A DNA stretch of 64,000 nucleotides from Marsupella aquatica (GCA_973895155.1 OZ316898.1:5815079-5879078), one strand, 5' to 3'. Shown: positions 41,270 through 61,679, counted from the stretch's first letter. The notes: generated by a model from the sequence alone, not told the origin. Translations and numbers: made by a program.

Positions 41270-44200
41270 ATGGCATCCAAGTTTGGAGGTGTCAAGTTTG
41301 AGGTAGAAAAGTATGATGGGCGCACGGATTATTTGCTATGGGAGAAGCAGGTTAAGGGAATTCTTCGTGCTATGGGCCTAGATCATCTGCTATCGACTCG
41401 GGAGGAGTCTAGCAGTGAGGAGGAGATCCCGTTGAGGAAATGGAGGTAAGAGCAAGTGATCGCTATGAATGCAGTTATGTTGTATTTGAAGCCGCATATC
41501 ATTAAGAAGCTGGACGACTACGAGGATTGTGTATCCTTATACAAGGCCCTCAGAGAGAAGTACTACCGAGAAGATGCCTCAGATCGGTTGTACAAGAAGT
41601 CTCTCTTGATGAGCTTGAGGCTAAAAGAAGGAGGCAAGCTTCGAAATCACTTGGATGAATTCGACAGCCTAGCTGTAGATTTGTCAAATCTTGGCAAGGG
41701 AGTGGAAGATGAAGATAAGGCATTGCTTCTTCTCAGTTCCTTACCCCCATCGTATCAAGGTTTGAAGCAGGTTCTCTTGTATAGAGACCTCAAAACCATT
41801 TCATATGATGAGGTGGTAAGCTCTTTGCTGTCAGATGATGCACAGAAGAAACTGGGTCATGCCCAAACACCATCTTCATCTGGCAGTGCATTGAATGTGA
41901 ACCGCGGGAGGACTCAACAGAGGATGACTGGCGAAAACAGGTCTTTTTCATAAACATACCCCTCACGGAATAGAGGCAAGGAGAAGGCTCGGTCTAAGTC
42001 TAGATCCAGGTCTAGAGAGAAATCTCTAGAAAGGAAACCAATTATATGTTGGAAATGTAACAAGCCTGGCCACATGAAACGAGACTGTCGAGTCAAGCAG
42101 ACTCATCAACCATCAGCGAACGCAGCCACTGATGTTGATATGATTGACTTGCTTGATGATAAAATCTTGTGAAGTCCAGATGTTGCCCTTTGCATTTCAT
42201 CCAGTGACAACGGTGATGAATGGATTTTAGATTGTGCCTGTACCTATCATATTTGTTGTATGAAAGAGTTTTTTACTTCTTACTCAGTATCAACCGGTTC
42301 CGTGTTGATGGGGAATGATCATCCTTGTCAAATTGTTGGAATTGGATCCGTGAAAATTCGGATGTTTGATGGAGCTGTGCGAACAGTGAGTAATGTCAGA
42401 CACATACCTGACATGAAAAAGAACTTGATTTCTCTTGGAATGCTGGAAGCAAATGGATGTCGGTGGAGTTCTGCTGATGGTATTCTTCAAATGTCAACCG
42501 GAGGCAAGGTTGTCATGAAGGGTAAGCGGCACAGGAATCTATACTTGTTGGAGGGCAACGTGATTTGTGAAGAAGCCAATGTAACTAGATCTCAAGGCGA
42601 GATGACTCAGTTGTGGCACTGCAGATTGGGACACATGAGTGAAAAGGGTTTGGCGGTACTTCGTAGGAAAGGACTTCTTTCTAATTAAGAATCTACTAAG
42701 CTAGATTTTTGTGAACATTGTGTGCTTGGGAAGCAACACAGGAGAACCTTTGGTGTTGGAACTCACAATACCAAAGCTATACTTGAGTATGTACATAGTG
42801 ATGTGTGGGGTCCAACCCCAACTCCCTCACTTTCTGAAAAATTGTACTATGTCACGTCCATTGATGATTACTCAAGGTATGTATGGATCACATTTCTACA
42901 CGCCAAGTCTAAAGTTTTTGGCACTTTTAAGAAGTGGAAAGCCCAAATTGAGAATCAGACTGGATCCAAAGTGAGATATCTTCGATCAGATAACGGCGGG
43001 GAGTACAGTTCAAGTGAATTTGAACTCTATTATGCAGAGCAAGGGATTACTCATCATCTCACGACAATTTATACTCCTCAACAGAATGGTGTTTGTGAGC
43101 GGTTGAACCGAACACTATTGGAGCGATCGAGGAGTATGTTGAGCCAATCAGGTTTACCACATGAATTTTGGGCTGAAGCTATAAATACGGCCACTTATTT
43201 GGTAAATCTTTTTCCTTCAAGTGCAATCAATTTCAAGACGCCGTTTGAAATGAAGTATGGACGGCACGCAGACTATCAGGTTTTGAGAGTCTTTGGAAGT
43301 GATGCATATGCTCTCACACCTAAGCAGAATCGATCTAAACTAGATTCTACTTCCAAGAAGTGTCTTTTTCTTGGTTATCAACCAAGTGTGAAAGGTTACA
43401 GGCTCTGGGATCCAGAAGCTTGTACGTTGCTTGTCAGTAGAGATGTATCCTTTAATGAATCCAGATCATCAAAGGAGGGGGAGAATGCTCAGGCTTCCCA
43501 TACTGACAAAGGTAAATCTCCTATCCTGGACCATGTTGTGGGGGAGATTGGTCATGAGAGTTTTCATGACATAAATGAAAGAGGTGCTCCGAGAATGGAG
43601 CTGGTTCCAGTAATGGAACAAGAGGAGCAGGCTGTTGTTGGAATACCTCAAATTCAACCAACAGAACAAGATCAACCAGAATTATCAGCTAGAAAATCGA
43701 GACGTACTACTCGAGCTCCTACAAGGTATGGACAATGGACAGATTCATCAAGGTTAGATGATGTTGACATTGCACCTGATGATGATGACAGAGCACTGAT
43801 CTTGGAAGAAGGAGAACCTTCTTCTTCTCATGAGGCGTGCATTTTAGACGAGAAAGATGAATGGAATGCAACGATGCAGAGGGAGTTGCAATCTTTAAGT
43901 GACAACAGAACATGGAAGCTGGTGCAACTGCCAAGTGATCAACAAGTGGTGGATAGCAAGTGGATTTACAAGCTGAAGGACAACTCTTCAGATGGAGGGG
44001 ACAAGATATACAAGACAAGGCTTGTTGCCAAGGGATTCACTCAAGAGAAGGGAGTGGATTACAATGAGGTCTTCTCTCCAGTTGCCAAGTATTCCACGAT
44101 ACGAATTTTGTGTCAACTTGTTGTGTTTTTTGATCTGGTGTTAGATCAAATGGATGTTGTTACTATTTTTCTCTATGGCACCTTGGAGGAACAAATTTTC

Positions 44201-44820
44201 ATGAGGCAACCACTGGGCTTTGTGAAGAAGGGCCAAGAGAGTTTAGTTTGCAGGTTACTTAAGTCCTTGTATGGATTGAAGCAAGCTCCTCGACAGTGGA
44301 ACAAGCGGTTTGATGATTTCATGTTTGCACAAGGATTTACTAGGATGGTGTATGATCCTTGTGTGTATACGAAATCAGTCAAGAATGGTGTGTTTGGTTT
44401 GCTCATTCTAGTGCTCTATGTGGATGACATGTTGATTGCGGCTAAGGATCAAACTGAGGTTGACTCAAAGCAAAATTGAGTTCTGAATTCCGAATGAAGG
44501 ATCTTGGGAAAGCCAAGAGGATCTTAGGTATGGAGACTACGAGGAACTTTGAAACTGGACAGTTGTGGCTGAATCAAGGCAAGTATGCTGAAAAGGTACT
44601 TGCAAGATTCAACATGGAAAATTGTAAGCCAGTAAGTATTCCTTTGGCTCCACATTTCAAGTTATCATCGGTTTTTTGCCCCACGGATCCAGTGGAGAGA
44701 GGCTTGATGACTAAGGTTCCTTATGAGAGGGCAGTGGGCAGTCTAATGTATTTGATGACATGTACCAGGCCTGATCTAGCCCTAGCAATGGGCAAAGTGA
44801 GTAGATTCATGTCAAATCCA
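41270..44820 (+). pseudogene. Outer Copia gag-pol, 5' part (Gag, zinc knuckle, protease, GAG-pre-integrase, integrase, RT)
   Basis: KFEVEKYDGRTDYLLWEKQV, CWKCNKPGHMKRDC, WILDC, LWHCRLGH...CEHC, HSDVWGP, RSDNGGEY, QQNGVCER, YKTRLVAKGFTQ, LYVDDML. Stops at 41447, 41951, 42170 and 42686; frameshift near 44465. Breaks at MSNP. Confidence 0.93.
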
Positions 44821-44821
44821 A

Positions 44822-45150
44822 TGTCACACCATTCTGAGTAGTGTAGTAGTATATCGTGCTATTAGAGTATGTACATTTGGTATGAGTGCTATTGGAGCCG
44901 ATAAGGTTCTGTCAGGTTTGTGTGAGAGGGTACTTCTCACTTGTGAGGCATTGAAAGGTCATCTTTCAATGTTGAGCCTTGGAGAGAGAGGAGCTTGAGT
45001 GTGGCTATGGTGGCTGTGAGCTCCGCTTGTGTAACGTGGATTCCTTGAGTAGTGCAAGGTGCATTGGCTTGACATACGTGTGTGATCGGTTCGGTGCGGG
45101 ATCGATGGGGTATTGTTGACCGAGATCGTTGTGCCGATTGTATGGAGATT
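44822..45150 (+). repeat. Repeat A1 (329 bp) of the Gypsy element
   Basis: Matches 60429-60757 with about 5 substitutions. Confidence 0.95.
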
Positions 45151-45162
45151 ACATTGAAAGAT
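45151..45162 (+). promoter_or_regulatory. Candidate self-priming site (PBS equivalent)
   Basis: ACATTGAAAGAT is the exact reverse complement of ATCTTTCAATGT at 44961-44972 inside repeat A. No TGG-type tRNA PBS is present. Confidence 0.65.
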
Positions 45163-45420
45163 CACATTCGAAATGTGCTGTACGGACTGTGCGGACAGAA
45201 GTTCGATTGATTGAGTTGTTGACGGTTCGTGGTAGCTCGGATCATGTGTTGTTATCGAACAGATCGTTGGTATCTTGACCTGTATCGTTGTTGTCCGATC
45301 GGCCTGCTTCCCGATCGATGTACAGATCTGTGATTGGTGACAGGTTTTGAGTTGGAGGTCGATTGATGATTCGTGGAGGAAAGCGAATGTTGAGTAGATT
45401 TTGGACAGTGGAAGTCGATC

Positions 45421-45510
45421 CGTGAGGCTTCAGATCTGATTGCCGGCTACTGTGAGGCTTCAGATCTGATTGTCGGCTACTGTGGGGCTTCAGATTTGAT
45501 TGCCGGCTAT
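45421..45510. repeat. 30-bp tandem repeat x3 in the Gypsy 5' leader
   Basis: tgtgaggcttcagatctgattgccggctac units at 45421, 45451 and 45481. Confidence 0.9.
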
Positions 45511-45749
45511 TGTTGGACGATGTTGGCAAGGTGTAGGTGAAGCGACGGCTCTTTTCCTGAAGGAACGGAGCTGCCAATGCCCCGTGCGACGGTATCATCG
45601 TTTCAGTGAAAGAAACGAGGGTCAAAGGTGTTGAATCAAGCTGCTGCCAATTCTGTGGAAGGGCTGCGTTTTTCATGAAGGAAATCGACAGTTTTCGGGA
45701 GCTTTTCATGAAGGAAGTAGTTGTTTTTGGGGTTAGGTGTGAGGCGCAC

Positions 45750-46056
45750 GAGGTCACCCATCCCGAAAGTGCTCGCGCAAGGCGACGCGTGAGGTCACCC
45801 ATCCCGAAAGTGCTCCCAACCGCGAACGCGAAGTCACCCATCGCGAGCGCAGGCAGACGCGAGGTCGAGGTCACCCATCCCGGGGCTATTCCGGGCCGTG
45901 AGCGCGAGGGGAGGCACAAGGTCGAGCGCGAGGAGGTCACCCATCCCGGGGCTATTCCCAACCGCGAGCGCTTAACTGGCAAGTTCTCATCCCACCTTGT
46001 GTACACACAAGCTTTGACAACTTGTTGTTTAGATTCAAGCGCCAGGGGGCTTTATA
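45750..46056 (-). promoter_or_regulatory. 5S rRNA-like (type 1) Pol III internal promoter with upstream TATA, plus four extra box-C copies
   Basis: Minus strand 45990-45931 reads ATGAGAACTTGCCAGTTAAGCG-22 nt-GGATGGGTGACCTCCT, with the same spacing as plant 5S box A/IE/box C. TATAAA at 46056-46051. Further GGATGGGTGACCTC copies at 45867-45880, 45791-45804 and 45750-45763, and a variant at 45830-45843. Confidence 0.75.
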
Positions 46057-46517
46057 CATTTCCCGGTTTGTTTAGAGGCCTATTCTAGGCCAAATCAGAG
46101 GCTGTTTTAGGGTTTTTGATACTTCTGAGTCCATCTAGACTCACAGATTGAACCAATTTTGCCTTGGTTCTCATCTACAACATTGGAGTGCCATTGTGAA
46201 GCCTATTATGAAGGCTCTTCCTTGAACCTTATGCACATTGTCATATTGATTTGCATTGGCTTTTGTGTGGAGAGTTGAATGGTATCCATTCTTGTTTCTG
46301 GATCCTCTTCACACATGTTTCCTGTTTATGCGCCATGTTAGTTTCGTGTGGGCGCTTGATTCCATAGGAGTGATCCGGGTTTGCAACTGGACATTCTAGT
46401 GTGCTGTGTATTTCTCTCTTGGTGATGTTGGAGTGATGCCCAACACACCATGGTGAGTGCTTGTGGTGCTGACAGGGATAGATTGCCCTTAGGGTTAGCA
46501 CATAGATTAGGTTAGGG

Positions 46518-48906
46518 TTGGTCACCACGGATTCTTCTGGTGCTATTGGATTACCCGATGGACGACGGACCGGTTTCACTTGGAGTGGGGCACAGTTTCG
46601 GCCAGCGGCATTGGTAGTAGTCAGCAGTGCAGCTTCAGACAGTGATTCTGATGAGGACTCAGTGACCAGTTCTCCTCATCATCAGGTGGTTGCATCTTTG
46701 TTGTGGGATATGGACGAGATGTACGGGGCTACAAAGGGCCCACGACGATACTCTGGTGTAGTTGGCACAATTGATCTGGATGACTTCATCCAGGAGTTTG
46801 ATACGTGGTGCGATATGCAGACATTGCATAACGTCATGTTGTTTACCCCTTTCATGGCATGGAAGGGATTATTCCAGCATTTGGAGGGGCCACCCATGGA
46901 TGACTACCATGAGTTTCGGAAGGCTCATTTGGTTGAGATTGAGGCATGGAGGCAGCATTGGTCGCCTAATTACATGTCCATCACCTATGGCACTAGTGTG
47001 GCTGCCCAACCCATTGCCACAGCTGCTGCTTCTTCTAGCAGCACTAGCCAGAGTGGCACACCATCCACCAGCAGCACTCCAACAGCATCCACCACTACTC
47101 CTGCCGGTGTGATTGTGACAGGAACTAGAGTTGCGCCAGCATTTAATCCTATGGTGGAATTCTTTGAGGTACTGAAGCAGAACTATCAGGGTGTGAAAAC
47201 TGATAAGTTGAAGGGTCTTCAAGAGTTCCAATGCAAGACTGGAGAGAGCCTACGTGAGGCATACACACGTATGCGCAGATTGATCACTGTCACCAAGGGA
47301 GTGACAGAGGCTCAGGCAGTCCAGTTTTGGTATGCAATTCTGGACAGAGAATTGCGACGCAGAGTGAGAGATGTCACTCTGCTTAGGGATGCAGATCCCA
47401 CATTAGCAGTTGTTTTCACCCTTTCTGAGCGCATTGAACTCAATATGGTGAATGAGAAGGTGGTGACTTCCGGATTTGCCAAGGAAGCACCAAAGGCTGC
47501 ATCTACATCCACACCACAGCCTACTGCATGGAAGAGCCAGAGGGAGAAGCCTATTGCACGAGAGTCTACCAGCCAGAGACCTGTGCCCTCTTATGATGGA
47601 CAGCAATCAGGATGTTGGACCTGTGGTGGGGATCATGCACAGAGATATTGTCCAGATCATAGAGGATCAGGGGGAGCATCAGCGACAGTGTAATCACTGT
47701 GGAGCTCCTAGACACACCAAGGATAGGTGTTTCTCACTCCACCCTGAGTTACGGAGAGGAGGATCCCGTACACATGATCAGGGAAGAGGAGGAGGAGGTA
47801 GAGGTGGTGGACGTGGTCGTGGCATGCCACATGCAGGGAGACAGGGAGGTGACGCTGCCCCTGCTGTAATCATAGATCCAAAGGATGCTAAGATTGCTCA
47901 ATTGGAGCAACAACTAGCTGCCATGGCTAGTTCCCAGGTGAGACCTAATTCTGGTGATGGGGCATCTACATCCTATGGACCTTCCACATCCCATGGTCCT
48001 TCCACATCTTATGGAGCTGATGGAGACCTTGCCACCATGGGATTCATGTGTGGCACTGCACATATTGATGCATCAGCAGCTTTGACACATGGGGCAGCCA
48101 AAGCTCTTGAGCCCCGAGGAGCAGTAGTGGAGTTAGATCCACAAAGGGGGGATGCACGTCGGCAGATAAAGCTTCCTCAGTCTTTTACATTGTCAGAGAC
48201 AGTTTAGACTGCCTCTATGAACCCGGTTCGGACAAACCCTGATGTGGGTAAGTTGGCAGAATCAAGTAGTGATGCAGTAGGGATGACAGGTACCTTGCTG
48301 GGGGCGGCTACTGCCATAGTACGCACCCCATTATTTTCAGCGACAGACATGCTGAACTTGGCAGTTGGTCCTGCAGAAGTGTTCAGATTGGCAGCTACAC
48401 TCTGTGAGGACACTCCAGTGGTTGCTTCCCATGCAGAAGCAACTTGCAGTGTTGATGCAGTGAAGACCATGCCACCTACTGCTACTAGTGAGACATGGCA
48501 TGCAGCAGCAGCGAGGTTGGTGGATTTACCAACACGCCCTGCATTTGAGAGGACTAGGTTTAAACCTAGTGTTGTGTCATTGGATAATCGGAGTGGTATC
48601 TTCCGATTAGTTGGGCCTCCTGGAGCAGTATACCAGCCAGAGAGAGTGTTACTGGATACTGGTGCTCAGCCCTTGATGTTGGGGAAGTCTGCCATACGTG
48701 GATTGGGATTGCGTCCAGAGGATTTGGAGGATTGTCCCTTTCCCATTCAGACTTCATTGGGGGGACCTACACCTACACAGCATATCACCAGGAGACCACT
48801 TGATTTGAGGATTCAGGAAGGTCATACCACAGATAGCTCACAGATACAGGCGCGAGCTATTCTGACTAAGGCAGAGTCATATGATGTGTTGGAGGGATGT
48901 ACAGTG
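46518..48906 (+). pseudogene. Gypsy gag (two CCHC knuckles) and aspartic protease, interrupted by the inner Copia
   Basis: Retrotransposon gag QCKTGESLREAYTRMRRL; knuckles CWTCGGDHAQRYC and CNHCGAPRHTKDRC (frameshift ~47690); in-frame TAG at 48205; protease VLLDTGAQPLMLG. The frame CTV|LYPMGF rejoins across the Copia insertion. Confidence 0.88.
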
Positions 48907-49327
48907 TGTTGAGCATAGACGACGATCGCAACGGCAAGCCCATGAACCATCCAACGCACAATAGTCGACACAAGAGATACGTGGTTCACCTCCTTGAGGC
49001 TACGTCCACGGGAACACACAAGAGAGCTTTACTGAACTCTAAGCCCGTCGGCTATACCGAGTCTCCACAGTGTAAGCTCTCCCTATCTCTCAAGTGGCTC
49101 CATAACAATGAGCCTTGGTTCTACCTCTCCAAGCACACATGCCTCTTATGATATAGTGTGCAACTTAGTTGTACCTAACCACATAGTTGTACCTAATCAC
49201 GTAGTTGTACCTAACCACATAGTTGTACCTAATCACGTAGTTGTACCTAACCACGTAGTTGTACCAACCCACGTTGTTGTACCAACCACGTCATACCTAA
49301 CCTAGACGTAAGAGTAAATACCCAACA
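48907..49327 (-). repeat. 3' LTR of the inner Copia (contains an 18-bp tandem array at ~49166-49290)
   Basis: Identical by eye to 54980-55400. Confidence 0.97.
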
Positions 49328-49518
49328 ATCTTCCCCTTGACTCTGGTCTAGGGGAGAGTAATACTGCCAATGTATATGATCCCTCAGCGGGAAGTTCTGG
49401 ACAGAAACCAAACCGGTTTCCCTCTCTAACTAGAGCAAACCAGAACTAAGCCGTAGCCTAATACATAGGAATGAGGAAGAGCATATATCAGTAATTACAA
49501 TGAATGTTTAAGAAAACT

Positions 49519-52500
49519 CTACTTGTGATGCAATTGCAAAACCTGCAATACGTCACGGTGTCTAGAGAAACTCTCCAAAGGAATCACTTTGGTAAATGCG
49601 TCAGCCGGGTTGAGTTTACCATCAATCTTGACTAGCTCAAACAAATTATCAGACACAGCCTGCCTGATAAAATGGTACCTGACGTCAATGTGCTTCACTC
49701 TGCTATCCATCACCTGGTTCACAGCAAGGTGGAGTGCACTTTGACTATCACAATGGAGCTTCACATTCCCCTGTGGCAATCCCATTTCAGTGATAAGTCT
49801 ATCCAACCAAATCGCTTCCTTTGCTGCTTCCGCAGCTGCAACATACTCTGCTTCTGTAGTAGACTGAGCAATACACTTCTGCAAAGTAGACCTCCAACTT
49901 ATGCATCCACCGCCAAGTGTGAACACGTATCCTGTTGTTGATCTCCTTCGGTCCAAATCTTGTCCATAGTCAGAATCTACATAGCCAATCAATGATCTAG
50001 CATTCTTTGCATTCGCATCAAATAAAAGACCATGATCCACGGTACCCTTCAAGTACCTGATAATCCACTTCACTGCTTCCCAGTGTACCTTCCCTGGATT
50101 CGACATGTACCTGCTCACCTTGCCCATAGCCATGGCAAGATCAGGTCTAGTGCAAGTCATCAAATACATGAGACTCCCCACTGCCTTGTCATATGGAACC
50201 TTTGACATCAACCCCTTCTCTGTGTCATCCGTAGGACAGAACGCTGATGATAACTTGAAGTGTGGAGCCAACGGGGTACTTACTGGCTTGCTATTCTCCA
50301 TGTTGAACCTTGCAATTACCTTCCTCGCATAACTGCTCTGCGTCAACCATAGCTTGCCAGCCTCCAAGTCCCTAGTGATCTCCATACCCAAAATCCTCTT
50401 AGCTGGCCCTAAGTCCTTCATCTTAAACTCTGCACTAAGCAGTGCCTTGAGCTTAACAATCTCAGACCTATCCTTGGCTGCAATTAGCATGTCATCCACA
50501 TAAAGTACTAAAACAATGAACCCAAAGACAACATTCTTCACCGGTTTCAAATACACACAAGGGTCAAATACACTTCTGTGAAAACCTTGTGACCGAATCC
50601 AATCGTCAAACCGCTTGTTCCACTGTCTTGGTGACTGCTTCAACCCATACAAGGATTTCAGCAATCTGCAAACCAATTCCTCCTGTCCTCTCTTCACAAA
50701 ACCTAGCGGTTGTCTCATGAAGATCACCTCTTCCAATGTGCCATAGAGGAAAGCTGTGACAACATCCATCTGATCTAGGAGCAGACCAAACATTACAACA
50801 AGTACACACAATAGTCGTATTGTAGAGTACTTAGCAACTGGTGAGAAGACCTCATTATAATCCACACCTTTCTCTTGTGTGAATCCCTTTGCTACCAATC
50901 TAGCCTTGTAGACCTTCGATCCACCTCCTATGGAATTATCCTTCAGCTTGTAAATCCACTTGCTGTCCACCACTTGCTGACCCTTAGGCAGCTTAACAAG
51001 CTCCCAAGTTTTGTTGTCCTTTAGTGACTGCATCTCCGTTTGCATTGCTGCAGTCCACTTCTGCTTCTCCTTTGAAGCACTTGCCTCATGAAATGAAGAA
51101 GGTTCTCCTTCTTCCAAAATTAACGCATCACCCTCATCATCAGCTGTAAAATCATCCTCTTGCAGTTGAGATGAATCAACCCACTGTCCATACCTTGATG
51201 GAGCGCGTACAGTGCGACCAGATGTTCTTCTAGCCGATGACTCCGGTTGATCTGCGTGTGCTGGTACAATTTGAAGCTCAACAGCATCCACTTGCTGCTC
51301 ACCAGCATCAACAAACTTCTCTGGTTCCTCTGGCACAGGAACCAGCTCCATAATTGGAGCAACTCCTTCTCTCCGGTCATGCACCTCATAACCAATCTCC
51401 CCTCAACGAGATCCGGGATAGGAGATTTTCCTTTGTTAGTACGGGAGACCTGAGTATTCTCCCCCTCCTTCAATAATCTGGATTCATTGAAGGAAACATC
51501 CCTACTGACAACGAGCTTACAGGCAATAGGATCCCATAGCCTATAGGCTTTCACACCACTCTGGTACCCAAGAAAAACACATTTCCTGGAGGTAGGATCC
51601 AACTTGGTCCTATTCTGCTTTGGTGTGAGAGCATATGCATCACTTCCAAAAATTACCAAGCCATGATAGTCTGCTTGCCGCTTATAGCGCATCTCAAACG
51701 GCGTTTTGAAATTGATAGCACTAGAAGGAGAAAGATTTACCAAATAAGCTGCGGTATTGACAGCTTCTGCCCAAAATTCTTGTGGTAAACCTGATTGGCT
51801 CAACATACTCCGTGACCGCTCCAACAGTGTCCGATTGAGCCTCTCAGCGACACCATTCTGCTGCGGAGTATAAACTGTGGTGAGATGGCGAGTTATCCCC
51901 TGTTCTGAACAGTACTCTTCAAATTCCATTGAAGTGTACTCCCCGCCGTTGTCTGACCTCAGACTCTTCACCCTTGTATCCAAACACTTGATCGTGTTTC
52001 CAGTCTGATTCTCCACCTGGGCCTTCCACTTCTTAAAAATGGACAAGACATCAGACTTATGTGTCATGAAATAAATCCACACAAATCTTGAGTAATCATC
52101 AATAAATGATACATAGTACAACTTTCCAGAGTGTGAGGGAGTCGGGGATGGACCCCACACGTCACTATGTATGTACTCAAGAACCGTTTTGGAACGATGA
52201 GTTCCAACACCAAAAGCACGACGATGCTGCTTTCCAAGAATGCAATGCTCACAAAACTCTAATTTACAAGATTGCAAATCAGAAATGAGTCCATTCTTCC
52301 GTAAGATAGCCAAACCCTTCTCACTCATGTGGCCTAGCCGTGAATGCCACAGTTGAGTCATCTCCTCGTGAGACTTGGTTACATTGGCCTCTCCACATAC
52401 AGTATTGCCCTGTAACACATACAAATTCTTTTGTCTACTCCCCTTCAAAATCACTGTCTCTCCCGACCTGACTTGAAGTTCACCATCAATAACGCTCCAT

Positions 52501-52790
52501 TGATGACCATTTGAATCCAACACACCGAGTGAAATCAGATTCTTACGCATGCCAGGTACATACCTGACTCCGGATACTATGCGCACAGCGCCATCAAACA
52601 TTTGAATCTTCACAGACCCAATTCCCTCAATTTGACAGGAGTGATCATTTCCCATCAGAACTGAACCGTTTGAAACAGAGTAAGAACTGAAAAACTCACG
52701 AATGTAACAAATATGAAAAGAGCAAGCACAATCAAGAATCCACACATCATCTGCTCTCCTAGATGACGTGCACAGGGCATACCCCCGGCT
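49519..52790 (-). CDS. pol: Inner Copia Pol (PR-IN-RT-RNase H), one frameshift near 51400
   Basis: WILDC, LWHSRLGH...CEHC, HSDVWGP, RSDNGGEY, YKARLVAKGF, LYVDDML, GYVDSD, HIDVRYHF, NPADAFTK. ORFs 51120-52745 and 49519-51384 join through a G-run that is one base short relative to the outer Copia (GEIG motif). Confidence 0.92.
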
Positions 52791-53825
52791 TCATAAAACA
52801 TACTCATCATTGAGTAAATCAGCTTCTCCATCAGCCCTAGCCACATTTGCCGATGAAGTTTCCGCTGCCTTTCCCTTACAGTCTCGCTTGAAGTGTCCAA
52901 CTTGGTTGCACTTCCAACATGTCACCTGCCTCCTCTGAGGGGATTTACCCTTGGACTTAGATCTGGATTTAGATCTAAACTGGGTTCTACGGTCCCCAGT
53001 TGGTCGCTGCATACTCCTCCCACGGTTAACATTGAGGGCAGCACCAGATGATGAAGGCTGTGACGTGATGTGCATCTTCTGCTGAAGATCATCACTAAGC
53101 AGAGAACTTGCCACGTCATTGTATGAAATGGTATCCCTATCACGATGCAACAACACTCGTGATAGGGACTGGTAAGATGGAGGCAATGAACTAAGAAGCT
53201 GCAGAGCCTTCGTCTCATCATTCAAAGTCTCCCCAAGGTTTTCCAAGTCAACGACCATATCGTTGAAAGCATCCACATGGTCTTGCAACTTCGTACCAGA
53301 TTCCTTCATCCTGAAACTCATCAGTTTGTAGGAAGTGTAGAGCCGGTTCGACAACTCCTTGCGGTGATACTTGCTCTGCAATTCCGCAAACAAGGACATG
53401 CAATCCTTATGTGCACCTAACTGCTTGATGATGGGAGGCATGAGATAGAGTGTAACACACCACACTCCCTGCTCCTGCATGCGGTCCCATTGTTTCTCAT
53501 CAACATCATCTTCACGAGGGCTCAGCAGTTGGCCCATCCCTGACGCATAAAGCACTCCCTTCACCTGCTTCTCCCATAGCAAGTAGTCAGAGCGCCCATC
53601 ATACTTTGTCACTTCATACTTGGGTCCCCCAAGCTTGAAAGTCCCCATCTTCTTCTTTACCGTGAGCTCCGGTAGTAGTACTGCTTCCTCCACCACACGC
53701 CGCACCAGTGATGGTATCGGTGTCACGTGCTCTTCCTCCTGCTCCTCTCTCTGCCCCTGAAACCTCCGCGGTGATCCTCGTGCTTCAAGTTCCACGTCTT
53801 CGAAAAACTCCTCCGAATCACTCAT
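52791..53825 (-). CDS. gag: Inner Copia Gag (344 aa) with zinc knuckle
   Basis: KYDGRSDYLLWEKQV, LLSSLPPSY, CWKCNQVGHFKRDC; ends at a TGA in frame with pol. Confidence 0.92.
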   Translation of the reverse strand: MSDSEEFFEDVELEARGSPRRFQGQREEQEEEHVTPIPSLVRRVVEEAVLLPELTVKKKMGTFKLGGPKYEVTKYDGRSDYLLWEKQVKGVLYASGMGQLLSPREDDVDEKQWDRMQEQGVWCVTLYLMPPIIKQLGAHKDCMSLFAELQSKYHRKELSNRLYTSYKLMSFRMKESGTKLQDHVDAFNDMVVDLENLGETLNDETKALQLLSSLPPSYQSLSRVLLHRDRDTISYNDVASSLLSDDLQQKMHITSQPSSSGAALNVNRGRSMQRPTGDRRTQFRSKSRSKSKGKSPQRRQVTCWKCNQVGHFKRDCKGKAAETSSANVARADGEADLLNDEYVL

Positions 53826-54979
53826 ATGAGAAAGTCACAAAAAATGTTGTTTTTCACAACTTCTCAAAAAACTCGAAACTCAACACCGCCGCGTAGCCCA
53901 CAAAGCTAGGAGTCCAATACTGAAAACCAAAATCAAATTTGAAATTTGACGGAAAAGTTATTCAAATTTCGGTCGAGGTGGGTAAAACCTTGGGAAACTC
54001 CCCCGTTTTGACCACCTCAGGGAATAACCGAAATACCAAGTACAACCCGTTGTCGGAATTGCGATGTGATTGGTGCGCTGCATTGCCAACTTCAATGGCT
54101 ACGACCTCGCCAAAAAATAACCAAAAAAGTTACCGTTCGGCGGATGAAATCTTTGTCGGACGGTCAAAAAATAGCTCTCTGGTTTTTTGGAATATTCTAT
54201 GACCCTTGTACAGGCCCTGTGGGAATTTTGGAAGAACAATCGAGGGGCTGACATGTGTCCTCGAACCCCCAAAACCCCCTACCACCCTTCGTCGTCGAAA
54301 TCTGGTCGCGCGCGCAGAAAATACACACGGCAGAATGTACCCCTCGACACCAAACGCAAGATATCTCACTCGGGTTTTGACGAAATCAAGATCCGATTTC
54401 AGATTTGGAAACTAGACTCCGAGGCGATGAAGATCGATATAAGAAGCACCCAAAACGAGGAAAGAACGAGGGAGAAAAAAATTGGTAAAGATGACAGATT
54501 TCTCTCAATTGCCATAGCCAATTTCGAATCAGTTTTTCAAAGAGAAAAAAATGGTACCTTGTCAACAACGAATGTTGATCAATTGCACTTGGTGCCGTCA
54601 CCAAGTCCAACAAGGTAATTGATTTTGCTTAGCCTTCCTCTTTGCATCAAAGAGCCAATCCCGGACTCAAAAACAATCGTCTTGCCTCAATCTCTCCGTT
54701 GAGTCAAAACACTTGACGCTTCTCCCTCCGAGTCGATTGCCAACTTTCTTCACAAAATCCAGAACGACGAAAACTTAGATCTCTCTGCACCACGAGCTCC
54801 GTTCAATGATTTCTTCACACCGTTAGAAAACTCTTGCCCTGATCTATCCGTTGAGCCCATAAACTCCAAGTTCCATGCGATGGAACTCTGGATAATCCAC
54901 CAACACTCAACGCTGGAAAAACCGTCATGAAATCCCGTCACGAACACACGTCACCTCCCAAGCATGCTCTGATACCAAT

Positions 54980-55400
54980 TGTTGAGCATAGACGACGATC
55001 GCAACGGCAAGCCCATGAACCATCCAACGCACAATAGTCGACACAAGAGATACGTGGTTCACCTCCTTGAGGCTACGTCCACGGGAACACACAAGAGAGC
55101 TTTACTGAACTCTAAGCCCGTCGGCTATACCGAGTCTCCACAGTGTAAGCTCTCCCTATCTCTCAAGTGGCTCCATAACAATGAGCCTTGGTTCTACCTC
55201 TCCAAGCACACATGCCTCTTATGATATAGTGTGCAACTTAGTTGTACCTAACCACATAGTTGTACCTAATCACGTAGTTGTACCTAACCACATAGTTGTA
55301 CCTAATCACGTAGTTGTACCTAACCACGTAGTTGTACCAACCCACGTTGTTGTACCAACCACGTCATACCTAACCTAGACGTAAGAGTAAATACCCAACA
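54980..55400 (-). repeat. 5' LTR of the inner Copia
   Basis: TG...CA; followed on the minus strand by the tRNA-iMet PBS. Confidence 0.97.
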
Positions 55401-55861
55401 CAGTGCTCTACCCCATGGGATTTATTCTTGATTTTTGGGAGGAATCAGTGTCATATAGACCTGATTGGCAGTCAGGAGATGCTCGATTGAGCAAATTGCC
55501 AGTGAGATTTAGTGGACCTGTGGGAGGCCCTAAATCCACACCATTGTCTTTGGCAGCATTCAGTGGTGTAATTGCTGGACCTGATGATTTGATTGAGGGT
55601 AATGCGCATGCAGCCGATGTTCCACCATTGGAGGAGTCTCATGAGGAGCACATCATGCGAGGATTACCTGTTGGCAGTGTTGTGCCACCAGTGTGGGGCA
55701 CTGCACAGGCCTTGCCACAGGCAGCAGCACGATTGGTACATGATGCATGGCGTCATGCTTTTACACCATAGTCAGGAGCAGAGCAGTCTCTTGCAGATGG
55801 ACCTGTGACTCTTTCACCATTGGATACCACTCCTATTGCTTGGCAGTATCCACCGGAGGGT

Positions 55862-56812
55862 ATTTGTTTGTTGGATCTTTTTGGTGGGATTAGCACTGGA
55901 TTGGCTGTTGTTCTTCAGGCAGGAATTCCTGTGCGTCGTTATTTGTATGTGGAGACAGATGAGACAACACGGAGGGTCTCATTGCGACATGTGGCTATAT
56001 TGGTGGATAGATATCCACAGTTGCTGCCATTGGATGTTGTTCGTGGTTATCAGCATGCACTACATGCTGATATTTCATTGCTGGGGGCGGATCATCTACA
56101 TCGTGTTGGCCCCATTGATTTGGTGATTGCTGGTTGGCCATGTCAGGGCCAATCTAGAGCTGGCATTGGGCATGGACTTCATGATCCACGCTCTGCATTG
56201 TTTTGGGAGATGTTACGGGTGTTGCGTCATCTCCAGCTACATCAAACACAGGCTCCAGCATACATTTTGGAGAATGTGCCATTGTTAGGTGATGATCGTA
56301 GTCGGATTGTTGCCAGTGTTCACCAGGTGAGGTCTTGGATTGGACCTGCTGTGTTATTGGATGCTGCACGTGTGGGTTCTCGTGCACATCGTCCATGCTT
56401 GTGGTGGACTAATTTGATCCCATGTGAGGTGCTGAAGCGCGCATTTGACAGCATTCCACGCTCACCAGCCTTAGTGGTGGATGATATTTTGGATCCAGGG
56501 CGTCGTGCACAGGGTGTGACCCAACCTGATAGACCTCCATTGGCAATGGTCAATGCATTTGGGTGCCCACGTTGTGCATTACCCACTCTTGTAAGCCACT
56601 CTGTTTCATATGCATTCAGAGCAGGTGGCCTTGGACTTGTATGGGACACAGCTCTCCAGCAGTTAGTGGAGCCTACTGCTGATGAGAGAGAGCGTGCTAT
56701 GGGATTTTTGACTGGCACCACTGCAGTTGCCTCTGTATCACAGGGTTTGCGGCGCCAGGTTCTTGGTCAAGCAATGGATTTGAATTGTTTGACTTAGATT
56801 ATCAGCTTGGGA
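55862..56812 (+). pseudogene. DNMT3-like DNA (cytosine-5) methyltransferase domain within the Gypsy pol
   Basis: Motif I LDLFGGISTG; II YVETD; III ADI; IV IDLVIAGWPCQGQS (catalytic PC); VI ILENV; VIII SRAHRPCLWWTN; IX ERERAMGF; X RRQVLGQAM. Same frame as the protease tail and RT, broken only by point stops. Confidence 0.92.
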
Positions 56813-57145
56813 GTAGCTGAACAGTTGCGGATGCGCTCTGCCGGAATTACTGATTGTCCCTTGGTGAGCTTGCGGTCCACTGAGACAGTATTGACCATAG
56901 CTGGGGGCGAGCAGACAGTCCATGGACCTATGACAGGATTGGCGGCTGGACAGATTGTTCAGCAGGAAGGGACTGCTCAATCTACTGCTAAATAGCAATC
57001 ATTGGCTATCTCTTCTACCCTACAAAGAGATATTAGGGATTTGGTGGAGAGTTGGGAACCACAGCTTGGCCCTAAGTTAACAGGGGAGGAGAGACGTCGC
57101 ATGCATTGATTCCTGAAGAGTTATTGAAATTGTTTTGCATTCAGC

Positions 57146-58470
57146 ATGAAGGATTTGGGGACATTGAAGGGCACTGGTATTCAGATTGAATTGGCTAGTG
57201 ATGCGCCAATCTTTCGTAGACCATACCGTTATAGTGACATGGAGAGAGCTCTGATTGAAAGCAGAACTCAAGATTTGTTGGAGGCTGGATTGGTGGAGAT
57301 TTCATATGGGGAGTATGCATCTACCACAGTGATGCCAGCCAAAAAAGATGTGCATGGCAATTACACAGATAGGCGCATGTGTGGTGATTACAGACCTATT
57401 AATCGCCAGACAAAATCTGATCGATATGCCATGCCCACACCTGAGGAGATCTTTGATGCTGTGGGGCATGCAAAGGTTTTCAGTTCATTGGATCTGAGGG
57501 CAGGGTACCATCAGCTTCCAATTAGGCATGCTGACAGGTCCAAGACAGCATTCTGGGGGATTGATTCTTATGGCAAAGATCGTTTGTATCAGTGGTTATT
57601 CTTACCATTTGGGTTGAAGAATGCACCAGCTGAGTTCCAAAGAGTCATGGATCGAATCCTTGCAGGTTTGGATTTTGTCAGATGTTATATTGATGATATT
57701 TTGGTCTATTCTTCTACTGTGGAAGAACATCAGCAGCACTTGCAGATTGTGATGGAGAGATTGAGAGCACATGGGTTGAAGCTCCATCCTAGCAAGTGTA
57801 AGTTCTTCCAAGACCAGATTGAGTATTTGGGCCACACTATATACCCAGGGGGATTGGGTGTACAGCAGACTAAAGTGGAGGCCATTACACAGATTCCTTG
57901 TCCTACTGATGTGAGTAGAGTTCGTGCATTCTTGGGATTGGCGAGCTACTACAGGAGGTATGTTAAAGGATTTAGCCAGCTTGCTAAACCTTTGACCATA
58001 CTCACTAAGTTGGATCAGGAATGGATTTGGGGTGATGACCAGGAGCATGCCTTTCAGGAGTTGAAGCAAAGGTTGGCATCATCCCCTATTTTGAGAAGAC
58101 CCATTTCATGCAGACCATTTCAGCTACACACTTGGAGTGGAGTAGGACTTGGAGCAGTGCTGACTCAGAAGGATGATGAGGGGAATGAGTTTGTTGTGGC
58201 TTATGCCAGTAGATCAAACAATTCAGCAGAGGCTAAGTATAGCTCTTATGAGGGAGAGTATTTGGCAGCAGTGTGGGCTGTTGCACACTTTCGTTGCTAC
58301 TTGTTTGGTAACCCCTTCACCTTGATCACTGATCATCAGCCTCTTAAGTGGTTAATGGAGTCTGACAAGCTTACATGGAAGCTTGCACGATGGGCATTGT
58401 TGTTATAGGAGTATGATTTCCAGGTGGTGCATAGGCCTGGAAAAGTGAACTTGGATGCAGATGGATTAAG
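57146..58470 (+). pseudogene. Gypsy reverse transcriptase and RNase H
   Basis: RMCGDYRPIN, LDLRAGYHQ, KTAF, LPFGLKNAPAEFQR, YIDDILVYS, FLGLASYYRRY, GLGAVLTQ, VAYASR, TDHQPLKWL, HRPGKVNLDADGLSR; TAG at 58406. Confidence 0.93.
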
Positions 58471-58698
58471 CCGCAATCCATGTACCAGTCAGCAAGATGA
58501 GACTGGAGCTAGATGGCATGATGAGTCAGATAAGGAGATGGTGCCAGGATGGCATGCATCTGCCTTTCTTTGTTGGGTGCCAGCATACAGTGGATTTGTG
58601 GACTCTACCTCATTGGATGGAGTGGATGATGAGTTTTCAGATGTGGATGTTGGTGAGGTAACTTCTGGACAGCAAGATATTCACAATGATGTGAGAGT

Positions 58699-60117
58699 GT
58701 GGAATATCTGCGCAGTAGTTCTATTGTTGGCAGTGTTGATGCCAAGGAACGTGACAGGGTTCTACAGAGAGCCAAGAGCTTTCGATGGGAGGGAAACCAT
58801 CTTTTGAGAGTATTGCATGATGGTAGGATGTTGGTGGTACCAAAACCATCACAACGAGTACATTTGGTGCGACATGCGCACGAGGAGTTGGGTCACTTTG
58901 GTGTGAAGCGCACTTACAGCTTGCTGCAGACATAGTATTGGTAGCATGGTATGCACACTCATGTCCAGCAGTTGATAGCTAAGTGTGTGATATGTGATAG
59001 AGTGAGAGCATCATTTAATGCTCCCACTCCCCAGTTGCACCCGTTACCGATCATGGGTTTGGGATATCGTTGGAGTTTGGATTTTGCTGGTCCATTACCT
59101 CTTACCCAACGTCATAATCGGTATGTTGTGGTCATGGTGGAGCACTTCTCCAAGTGGATTGAGCTAGTGGCGTTGCCAGATAAAGCCAGTGGAGGAGTTG
59201 CTGCTATATTTTTGGATCGTGTACTCAGTCATTTTGGAGCACCAGCTGAGGTGTTGACTGATCAGGGAACTGAGTTCCATGGAGAGTTTGAGAGTTTGTG
59301 TGAACAAGCTCTGATTGATCATCGCACTACCTCTCGTGATCATCCTGAGGCAGATGGATTAGCTGAGAGAGTTGTGCAAACTGTGAAGAGAGGATTGCAT
59401 AAGTATGGCTTGCAGATTGGTCATCTGGGAGATTGGGATCTCCAGCTACCTTGGTTAGCTATGGGCTACCGTTTCAGTCGGCAAGCATCACTTGCATCCT
59501 TCTCACCCTACTTTTTGCTCTATGGTAGAGAGCCAGATTTGCCAGCAGCTATTCGTCGTCATGCTGCACCAGTTGTGAACTTGGATGATCCTGATGTTTG
59601 GGTCAAGGTGTGTTCAGAGAGAGCACGGGTATTTCAGAGAGTGATGCCCATGGCTTTTGACAACCTTGCCATTGCCCAACATCGTGATACTTTGAGGTAT
59701 GCCACTATTCGTGGAAGAGGTTACCGTGCAAGCATTCGACGATTTCATCCTGGTGATCATGTTTATTTACAGCAGACAGCACCCACGACACTTGATGTGA
59801 CCACAGGCCGGACAATCTTACGTGTGCGTGAAGTGTTGCCTTCTGGTGTCCTGATGTTGGAGGGACGCGATGGTATGGTTTGGAAGGATCATGTGCGCAA
59901 TTGTGCACCATGTCACCTTCCCAACATTGATAGTACAGTAGATCCAAGCTTGGCACATGTTCGTGCTGGCTTGAAATGTATGTTGTGTAGAGCTGCTCAG
60001 GGAGCAACTACTATGTTGATTTGTGATAAGTGTTCTAGAGGATGGCACATGTCATGTTTGACACCACCATTGCAGGTGATTCCTAGTGGATCATGGTTGT
60101 GTCCTCAGTGTCAGTGA
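58699..60117 (+). pseudogene. Gypsy DDE integrase with C-terminal PHD finger
   Basis: HHCC zinc domain (HEELGH...CVIC); D in SLDFAGP, D in LTDQGTEF, E in GLAERVV; C4HC3 PHD CMLC...LICDKCSRGWHMSCLTPPL...WLCPQC at 59977-60111. TAG stops at 58933 and 58942. Confidence 0.92.
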
Positions 60118-60277
60118 AGCCGACTAGTTATCATTTGTGTTCTCTTGGCAGATATGGATTGCAGGTAGGTGATCGATGGGGCTCACTTGCATCCGGCTTC
60201 CTGATCTTCACACCTAAAAAGGTGTATATCAACCTTGTAGAACTCATGGCTAGCTAGAGTTAGGGGACCTTACTCCC

Positions 60278-60289
60278 AGCTAGGGGGGC
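60278..60289 (+). promoter_or_regulatory. Polypurine tract of the Gypsy element
   Basis: agctaggggggc immediately precedes repeat B1, with an imperfect hairpin upstream (60250-60283). Confidence 0.75.
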
Positions 60290-60896
60290 GATTGTGGGCT
60301 TTGGACATGTGTGAACATGAGTTCCACTTGTATTCCATTCTTGTATTTGTGATGTGGCAGTGTGACTATGTCTGGATGTATGTGACAAGCGATGTATGTT
60401 GTGTAGCGATATGTATGCGCACGACAGCTGTCACACCATTTTGAGTAGTGTAGTAGTATATCGTGCTATTAGAGTATGTACGTTTGGTATGAGTGCTATT
60501 GGAGCCGATAAGGTTCTGTCAGGTTTGTGTGAGAGGGTACTTCTCACTTGTGAGGCATTGAAAGGTCATCTTTCAATGTTGAGCCTTGGAGAGAGAGGAG
60601 CTTGAGTGTGGCTATGGTGGCTGTGAGCTCCGCTTGTGTAACGTGGATTTCTTGAGTAGTGCAAGGTGCGTTGGCTTGACATACGTGTGTGATCGGATCG
60701 GTGCGGGATCGATGGGGTATTGTTGACCGAGATCGTTGTGCCGATTGTATGGAGATTGATTGTGGGTTTTGGACATGTGTGGACATGAGTTCCACTTGTA
60801 TTCCATTCTCTTGTATTTGTGATGTGGCAGTGTGACTATGTCTGGATATATGTGACAAGCGATGTATGTTGTGTAGCGATATGCATGCGCACGACA
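60290..60896 (+). repeat. Right terminus of the Gypsy: B1 (60290-60426) - GC - A2 (60429-60757) - B2 (60758-60896)
   Basis: B1 and B2 differ by about 4 substitutions and a 2-bp indel. A2 matches 44822-45150. The B1/A2 junction is the palindrome GACAGCTGTC (60423-60432). Confidence 0.95.
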
Positions 60897-61475
60897 CCAG
60901 GGAAGGTACATTGGGAGGCTGTGAAATGGATTCTCAGGTATCTTAAGGGCACAATAGACTATGGTCTGCTGTTTGATAGTAGTTCAAACAAAACCAAATC
61001 TTTGGTTGGCTATGTAGATTCTGACTACGGAGGCTGTCTGGAAACAAGGAGGTCAACTACTGGGTATGTCTTTACTCTTGGAGGAGGATGCATAAGTTGG
61101 AGATCTATCTTGCGGAAGTGTGTATCTCAGTCTACTACAGAAGCAGAATATGTTGCAGCAGCAGAAGCAGCAAAGGAAGCAATTTGGTTGGATAAGCTGG
61201 TCACTGAGATGGGATTGGAGCATGGAAAAATGACTCTTCATTGTGACAGCCAAAGTGCGCTTCACCTAGCTATTAACCAGGTTATGGATAGCAGGGTGAA
61301 ACACATTGACATCAGGTACCATTTTATTAGGCAAACAGTGTCTGATAAAATGTTTGAGCTAGTCAAGATTGATGGAAAGCTCAACCCGGCTGATGCTTTT
61401 ACCAAAGTGATTCCTTTGGAGAGCTACTCAAGACACCGTGCTACTTTGCAAGTTTTGCATTTGCAACACAAGTAG
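60897..61475 (+). pseudogene. Outer Copia pol, 3' part (RT tail and RNase H)
   Basis: PGKVHWEAVKWILRYLKGT, GYVDSD, STTEAEY, HIDIRYHF, NPADAFTK. Confidence 0.93.
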
Positions 61476-61679
61476 AGTAACTTAACAATATGTAATTTCT
61501 ATATATGGGTTACTCAATCCTGTTATGGCTACGGCTTAATTCTAGTTAACCTTTAGTTAACCTTAAATGGTTTTTAGGGGGACACCTATGGTTTTAGGTG
61601 ATTGTCTAGAATTTCCCGCTGAGTATCTCATATGGATAGTAGAAATTGCAGTCCCCAAGACTAGAGTCAAGGGGGAGTT

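Follow-up and report, generated by a model that had tools for sequence, protein, structure and literature searches.

Retrotransposons that carry their own cytosine methyltransferase are rare, and among the relatives of plants they are known mainly from one alga. In Klebsormidium nitens, the element KnitGypsy-Dnmt3 holds a DNMT3 domain inside a Gypsy pol, with key residues conserved and a Ka/Ks below 0.2 (de Mendoza et al. 2018, PMC5890265). The legend to Fig. 4c of that paper gives the element a DIRS-type repeat structure (A-coding-B-A-B) together with Gypsy-type domains, and beyond this legend we found no description in the literature of split direct repeats combined with a DDE integrase. Passages of the same paper on retrotransposon methyltransferases report de novo CG methylation by these enzymes and propose that retrotransposons methylate their own retrotranscribed DNA. 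A PHD finger, a target duplication, a palindrome, a leaky stop and self-priming go unmentioned in its text, and the PHD finger is likewise unmentioned in its supplements. A 2026 preprint (10.64898/2026.05.21.726589) uses the name "streptophytes (Gypsy-DNMT3)" and also describes, as "complex epigenetic toolkits", the EpiLTRs of Euglena and Collodictyon, in which a DAM domain is found together with a DNMT4-like DNMT and a chromodomain. Fusions of PHD fingers and chromodomains to retrotransposons are known and widespread; for example, REM1 of Chlamydomonas is a PHD-bearing green-algal Gypsy element according to the passage of PMC6673714 that cites it. Here we describe a Gypsy element with a DNMT3-like domain and a PHD finger in a stretch of 64,000 nucleotides from Marsupella aquatica (GCA_973895155.1 OZ316898.1:5815079-5879078), the whole of which is referred to below as the window.

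An earlier note on this DNA had seen five traits together in one element, namely a DNMT3-like methylation writer, a PHD chromatin reader, an antisense Pol III-type promoter, tRNA-free priming and circle-type termini, and had read them as linked adaptations of a self-contained epigenetic retroelement. Our analysis indicates that the element is probably a dead member of a bryophyte Ty3/Gypsy family that is very abundant and belongs to the Gypsy-DNMT3 group, and that its DNMT, PHD finger and split repeats stand together by descent from an old green-lineage clade. This kind of element was already published from Klebsormidium in 2018, and what is new here is a bryophyte member with some undescribed details. 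In liverworts and mosses the package is widespread and very abundant, and it takes in the PHD finger, a conserved palindrome inside the LTR that is the presumed cutting site, a probably leaky stop and a likely capacity for self-priming. Also new is a chlorophyte sister lineage that has the DNMT in another position.

Domains and permuted repeats of the Marsupella element

Positions 44822-60896 of the window hold one broken copy of a Ty3/Gypsy retrotransposon, as judged from the listing of open reading frames (ORFs), from Pfam and from repeat searches, and the limits that the earlier note gave to the element are correct. Once a nested copia element is taken out, the Gypsy element measures about 9.6 kb. 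Its domains, all on the plus strand, follow the order gag-protease (PR)-DNMT3-like-(conserved stop)-reverse transcriptase (RT)-RNase H-DDE integrase (INT)-PHD. The writer is a DNMT3-like C5 cytosine methyltransferase domain at 55805-56794, lying in an intact ORF of 330 codons between premature stops at 55769 and 56795. This ORF, taken as 55805-56797, matches PF00145 at 4.5e-11 with 43 bits (cut-off 22), and its top solved relatives are all DNMT3A, DNMT3C or DNMT3B, from 8.5e-12, with M.HaeIII and the plant enzyme DRM2 well behind. Relatives of only 37-46% identity show little or no variation in the motif I glycines, the catalytic cysteine, ENV, the GSxAHR block and motifs IX and X. As reader, the C-terminus of the integrase bears a canonical PHD finger (59977-60111), which matches PF00628 at 1.1e-10 and finds its nearest solved fingers, by PDB matches, in CHD4, KMT2D, PHF21A/BHC80, ATXR5, DPF3, KDM5, AIRE and UHRF1. 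Writer and reader are both present as had been claimed. We take these solved fingers to be mostly readers of the unmodified H3 tail, which is a lead only; the ADD domain of DNMT3 likewise reads unmodified H3.

The repeats at the ends are permuted, with the layout A...B-A-B, in which A stands alone at the left end and B-A-B at the right. Repeat A1 (44822-45150, 329 nt, plus strand) starts with TGTCAC and is 98.5% identical to A2, from which it differs at 5 positions. At the right end, and on the same strand, a polypurine tract AGGGGGGC (60282-60289) lies directly ahead of repeat B1 (60290-60426, ending in CGACA), which is followed by GC, repeat A2 (60429-60757) and repeat B2 (60758-60896, again ending in CGACA). 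Because the polypurine tract directly precedes B1, the true long terminal repeat (LTR) is B+A, and the A2/B2 join is the end of one LTR abutting the start of another. The B1/A2 junction forms the palindrome GACA-GC-TGTC (60423-60432), which we regard as a probable integrase cutting site. The sequence AGGGGGGCG precedes B1 in elements of Calypogeia, Sphagnum and Riccia as well, a G-run occupies that place in a metagenome locus called L006 and in Klebsormidium, and each of the related lineages examined has a CA-NN-TG palindrome. The element ends in TGTC...GACA within a 4-bp target-site duplication (TSD), CCAA at 44818-44821 and CCAG at 60897-60900. Since copia contigs without the insertion read CCA and then GGGAAGG (loose ends 44820/44821), the target was CCAG and one G-to-A change came later. 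Taken together, A1, B1-GC-A2-B2, the terminal sequences and the TSD confirm that the termini are of the circle type. A standard LTR finder would treat A1 and A2 as the two LTRs, leave out B2 and then find no TSD, so that the family is likely under-called.

The remaining coding features are those of the Ty3/Gypsy class. The gag ORF (46518-47693) contains a CX2CX4HX4C zinc knuckle and is 45-58% identical to the gag of related loci. The start of the pol frame, with an aspartic protease (LLDTGAQ; PF13650 at 0.0017), spans 47476-48906, contains an in-frame stop at 48205 and is cut by the nested copia. RT and RNase H occupy 57146-58405 (RVT_1 at 5e-35, RT_RNaseH at 1e-29; also placed by RT trees), and the rve core of the DDE integrase, recognized by Pfam and shifted in frame relative to RT, occupies 58951-59976. 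The class assignment follows the PR-RT-RNase H-INT order of pol, the Gypsy-type RT, the DDE integrase and the placement of the RT with Gypsy in trees. TG...CA ends and a short TSD, as is usual in Ty3/Gypsy, are found, and the two full identical LTRs that ordinary Ty3/Gypsy elements have at both ends are absent. PR, DNMT and RT lie in one reading frame after removal of the nested copia.

This copy is dead because its pol frame has eight in-frame stops (48205, 55769, 56795, 56993, 57107, 57125, 58406 and 58805; that at 56993 is a conserved feature of the family), because a frame shift precedes the integrase and because it holds the nested copia. The latter, a Ty1/copia element foreign to the Gypsy element, lies on the minus strand at 48907-55400 with the TSD CAGTG at 48902-48906 and 55401-55405. 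Its 421-bp LTRs are 100% identical and its gag and pol ORFs are long and open, which together with the 5-bp TSD marks it as a very recent insertion. An 18-nt tandem repeat is found inside its LTR at 49127-49323. The Gypsy element itself sits in the coding sequence of an outer copia (42395-44821 and 60897-61478), whose frame halts at 44821 and picks up again at 60897. The nested and outer copia elements are 72-82% identical in DNA. No tRNA gene was detected in the window by ARAGORN.

Distribution of the traits in related elements

Matches to the DNMT domain at E<=1e-30 fall into 222 clusters at 50% identity, many of whose representatives are polyproteins of 1000-3400 aa, and close DNMT relatives are named from Calypogeia, Marchantia, Riccia and Sphagnum. 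The same domain order and permuted ends recur in loci of liverworts and Sphagnum and in moss metagenomes. A Calypogeia locus (L001) has the A...B-A-B layout with a perfect TSD, AATG, and the junction GACA-AC-TGTC; a Sphagnum locus (L002) has a perfect TSD, ATTC, and the junction GACA-GC-TGTC; a Sphagnum-type locus (L019) has a perfect 4-bp TSD, AAGG, with a GACA-NN-TGTC junction; and three Riccia loci (L004, L022 and L033) have B-A-B. Among 80 metagenome loci gathered with an RT profile, every bryophyte-type locus has the order PR-DNMT-RT where that part is covered and INT-PHD where that part is covered. The locus of Klebsormidium nitens (L089) shows PR-DNMT-RT-INT-PHD, B-A-B and the junction GGCA-GC-TGCC. 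In contigs of two organisms, A and B, the family is extremely abundant (10317 and 5115 pieces), and it is also found in air and biocrust metagenomes. Differences among family copies are mostly transitions. The 5' boundary of the family was not resolved among the contig loose ends listed.

A sister group, here called chlorophyte-type, has the order RT-RNase H-DNMT-INT-PHD. It includes Haematococcus lacustris and is represented by loci L005, L006 and L088 and by proteins P0125, P0139 and P0150. Since the homologous DNMT sits at different places in pol in the two subclades, it was either captured twice or relocated within pol. L006, an ENA metagenome contig of 16102 nt, closes on itself through a 55-nt overlap of its ends and has two tandem LTRs of 795 nt. 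A G-run precedes the LTR, within which GACAGCTGTC is found at 208 nt from the start. The contig may represent a true 2-LTR circle, or else the assembler may have walked through B-A-B. Precomputed Pfam annotation of the Haematococcus protein P0314 (L088) lacks PF00145, yet tblastn detects a DNMT there, which shares 48% identity with the one of L006. Pfam censuses therefore under-count the DNMT in the chlorophyte-type lineage, and counts of "PHD-only" elements taken from the Pfam column were dropped, leaving only three loci, L037, L038 and L054.

These three loci, from soda-lake and other metagenomes, are nested within the chlorophyte-type group and have INT-PHD, with GACAGCTGTC placed where the 3' repeat begins. 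No DNMT match was found anywhere in them by tblastn, and the 754 nt between their RNase H and integrase leave no room for a DNMT. Neither the PHD finger nor the palindrome thus requires the DNMT. L038 is an old copy, with A repeats of 80% identity, in which no B2 was found, and its layout is read only from the palindrome where A2 begins. Two further cases bear on a possible lineage with a DNMT and no PHD finger. A Closterium locus (L087), which does not decide the matter, has PR-DNMT-RT-INT, ends right after the integrase beside another gene and shows no terminal repeats, and polyproteins of the P0280 type have 271 residues past the rve core with no PHD match, which is suggestive only.

In RT trees all of these elements form one clade (support 98-99), apart from Gypsy elements that have neither DNMT nor PHD, and outgroup Gypsy elements with enough sequence have ordinary LTR pairs. 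The traits are therefore neither scattered independently over the tree nor unique to this locus, either of which the earlier note would have taken as refutation; DNMT, PHD finger and split repeats recur together in one clade. This bears on the idea that the locus is an accident, in which the DNMT and PHD segments would be host gene fragments or other nested pieces and B-A-B would be a rearrangement or the outcome of recombination between tandem LTRs. Such an origin might be suspected of a degraded copy in a transposon nest of outer copia, Gypsy and inner copia, but the same order and termini occur, with TSDs of their own, in independent insertions from at least five other genomes or metagenomes, and DNMT, RT and PR share a frame once the copia is removed. 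We consider it extremely improbable, and an accidental juxtaposition of DNMT and PHD at this locus was rejected given the same order and ends in relatives.

The reading of the traits as linked adaptations, with a persistent circular complementary DNA (cDNA) that is self-methylated before the PHD finger selects the chromatin for its insertion, calls for more weighing. It gains from the co-occurrence of DNMT, PHD and split repeats over a deep clade, from the conservation of the catalytic motifs of the DNMT and from the chlorophyte-type lineage, where the DNMT directly adjoins INT-PHD. Additionally, the PHD finger resembles fingers that presumably read unmodified H3, the same mark that is read by the ADD domain of DNMT3. 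Also in its favor, de novo CG methylation by retrotransposon DNMTs is reported in PMC5890265, where self-methylation of cDNA is suggested. Against it stand the three loci that combine a PHD finger with a palindromic junction and lack a DNMT, and the two different positions of the DNMT in the two subclades. Descent alone, moreover, predicts co-occurrence within one clade.

The conserved stop, the candidate self-priming arms and the leader

Between DNMT and RT the Marsupella copy has an in-frame TAG (56993-56995, plus strand) followed by CAA TCA, a candidate read-through site. When the window was compared at the homologous place with L002, L004 and L007-L073, TAG/TAA-CAA-YYN was found in 25 of 27 bryophyte-type loci, 48-51 codons ahead of the RT match. 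We take this to be the read-through context of the tobacco mosaic virus type, and the stop is likely a programmed read-through site. As a stop in such a context separates DNMT from RT, DNMT and INT-PHD would be made as separate products in the bryophyte lineage, the former as part of the gag-PR translation unit and the latter as part of the read-through product. Host DNMT3 enzymes, in contrast, pair the ADD and catalytic domains in cis. The bryophyte lineage, where the conserved stop splits the DNMT from RT-INT-PHD, is in this respect unlike the host pairing that the earlier note saw echoed in the element, and the separation of writer and reader counts against linked adaptation.

The proposal that priming is tRNA-free is supported. 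Immediately after A1, at the position of a primer-binding site, lies ACATTGAAAGAT (45151-45162, plus strand), which does not start with TGG, is complementary to A itself and is not known to be complementary to the 3' end of a tRNA. Its partner, ATCTTTCAATGT, lies inside A at 44961-44972 (plus strand), and the two form a perfect 12-nt complement that was equalled in 1 of 2000 shuffles, a candidate duplex for self-priming. Arms of differing sequence occupy the same places in Calypogeia (L001, 12 nt), in the Sphagnum-type L019 (17 nt) and in L028 (10 nt). In each of these cases no other stem of at least 9 nt was found nearby, and every downstream arm begins with AC at the first bases after A. Because the arms covary in three bryophyte lineages, they support a conserved pairing of the Tf1 self-priming type, in which the upstream arm may correspond to the 5' end of the RNA.

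The antisense Pol III-type promoter was not confirmed. What the leader contains is an array of four units at 45750-45973, with four copies of GAGGTCACCCATCCCG that read as the motif GGGATGGGTGACCTC on the minus strand. The reverse complement of GAGGTCACCCATCCCG shares 15 nt with a published primer in the coding part of plant 5S rDNA (PMC8704621), and by this identity the 16-mer is likely derived from 5S. A recognizable 5S gene with an internal control region is not present: the Rfam 5S_rRNA model gives no match in the leader (451 nt) at E<=10, where no other RNA family is matched either, and no RNA family is found in the whole window at gathering scores. A 12-mer of the array, with at most 1 mismatch, occurs nowhere else in 733 kb made up of the window and 86 loci, of which about 45 are related elements. 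Depth was compared over the region 44700-48950 in contigs from public runs X1, X2, X5 and X10, a crude per-contig measure. In organisms A and B the leader (45126-46260) is roughly 10 times less deep than repeat A or gag, and it is almost absent in runs X5 and X10. Upstream of the array, three 30-nt tandem units resembling CTGTGAGGCTTCAGATCTGATTGCCGGCTA lie at 45422-45513.

It could be supposed that the array functions as a Pol III unit of the kind found in Cassandra, whose antisense RNA would regulate the element. The 15-nt identity occurs in all four units, presumably 5S-like sequence continues beyond the primer for about 70 nt in the last of them, and the array is present in other copies in organisms A and B, some of them with extra units (joint 45943->45769; 31 and 15 contigs at 45857). 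The blank result with the 5S model argues against a working unit, as do the absence of a T-run terminator after the array on the minus strand, the absence of the motif from all 86 loci and a contig depth about 10-fold below that of gag. We regard such a unit as very unlikely. Cassandra TRIM elements share with this leader the presence of 5S-derived sequence inside a retrotransposon, but they carry 5S RNA genes, whereas here a fragment array lies antisense, in the leader and not in the LTR, and is not recognized as a 5S gene. The array is best described, from sequence, as an acquisition of the leader in one subfamily rather than as a promoter. As the Pol III trait is not family-wide, it too weakens the case for linked adaptation.

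A proposed cycle and comparison with known systems

The features described above suggest a cycle in which the true LTR is B+A. Transcription would start about 140 nt into A, and the 5' end of the RNA would fold back to pair with the site that directly follows A and so serve as primer, in the manner of Tf1. The product of reverse transcription would be BA-internal-BA, with the ends ATTG.../...GATT and not TG...CA, and the joining of two BA ends would create an exact A/B junction. An ordinary DDE integrase could then cut after each CA of the CA-GC-TG palindrome inside the LTR, leaving a recessed CA-3'OH with 2-nt 5' overhangs. This is the geometry of processed retroviral ends. Insertion of the permuted form would give A-internal-B-A-B with a 4-bp duplication. 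In addition, the PHD finger on the integrase may tether insertion to histone H3 tails, and the DNMT, made with gag-PR upstream of the leaky stop, may methylate DNA, possibly the cDNA of the element itself as proposed in 2018.

Several observations weigh against this account of the element and its descent. The A/B joins are exact in all copies seen, which is unusual for end-joining repair, and genomic copies do not tell whether the end-joined intermediate is a circle with 2 LTRs, is a concatemer or arises by templating. The 5' arm may lie elsewhere than at the 5' end of the RNA, and no complementary arm was found in L006. Finally, the streptophyte-type RT grouping that includes Klebsormidium has 88% support in the Shimodaira-Hasegawa-like approximate likelihood ratio test (SH-aLRT) of a quick tree in which the Klebsormidium branch is long.

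As for the co-occurrence of the traits, shared descent appears to be the simplest reading and a better one than linked adaptation, with functional coupling a conjecture drawn from sequence. We prefer it because one lineage lacks the DNMT, because writer and reader would be separate products and because the array is not family-wide. Of the proposal of linked adaptations, what stands is that DNMT, PHD and split repeats co-occur across one clade; the DNMT-less lineage, the separating stop and the restricted Pol III trait do not agree with it, and the persistence of any circle is a supposition of that reading. On balance it is unlikely. A narrower form, in which the writer, the reader and the permuted ends are coupled, would have the end-joined (circular) cDNA methylated by the abundant gag-PR-linked DNMT of the element before the PHD-tethered integrase opens the CA-GC-TG palindrome. 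This palindrome holds CHG and CG-adjacent sites. We give the coupling little chance; if it did occur, new copies would carry the mark from the moment of insertion and would lie in chromatin that the element had selected.

Comparison across the clade can inform two questions. One is the benefit that a DNMT brings to a transposon, for which the lineage of L037, L038 and L054 is a possible natural control. The other is how a DDE integrase yields split repeats like those of DIRS.

Similarity to other retroelements is found at several separate points. With DIRS, Ngaro and PAT-like elements the family shares split direct repeats of the form A1...B1-A2-B2, in which the internal B1-A2 join is the junction of two ends. 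Members of the DIRS order, however, use a tyrosine recombinase and make no TSD, whereas the present elements have a DDE integrase, TG...CA-type ends, a 4-bp TSD and a Gypsy RT; no phage-type integrase was found by Pfam, which found rve instead. Chromoviruses and the PHD-bearing REM1 of Chlamydomonas likewise have a histone reader fused to the C-terminus of the integrase, where it presumably tethers integration, but that of chromoviruses is a chromodomain, and here a PHD finger is combined with a DNMT and permuted repeats. As in Tf1 and sushi-type elements, 11-17 nt after the 5' repeat are complementary to a stretch inside the repeat and a tRNA-type primer-binding site is absent. In Tf1 it is the first bases of the transcript that pair with the primer-binding site, while the pairing here is seen in covarying genomic arms. 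EpiLTRs are also LTR retrotransposons that carry a DNA methyltransferase domain together with a chromatin-reader domain; their domains are different, their hosts are Euglena and Collodictyon, and they were assembled independently of the bryophyte elements.

The closest described element is KnitGypsy-Dnmt3. Both have a DNMT3-type domain inside a Gypsy pol, sharing the frame of PR and RT in the Marsupella copy, and both combine DIRS-like A-coding-B-A-B repeats with Gypsy domains. The Klebsormidium locus agrees with the bryophyte elements in domain order, in B-A-B and in the CA-GC-TG junction, and the RT tree groups them with a support of 88. They differ in that the present family has a bryophyte host, in which it is extremely abundant, in that RT identity to the K. 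nitens copy is 42-56%, and in that the leader of this bryophyte subfamily carries the 5S-derived array.

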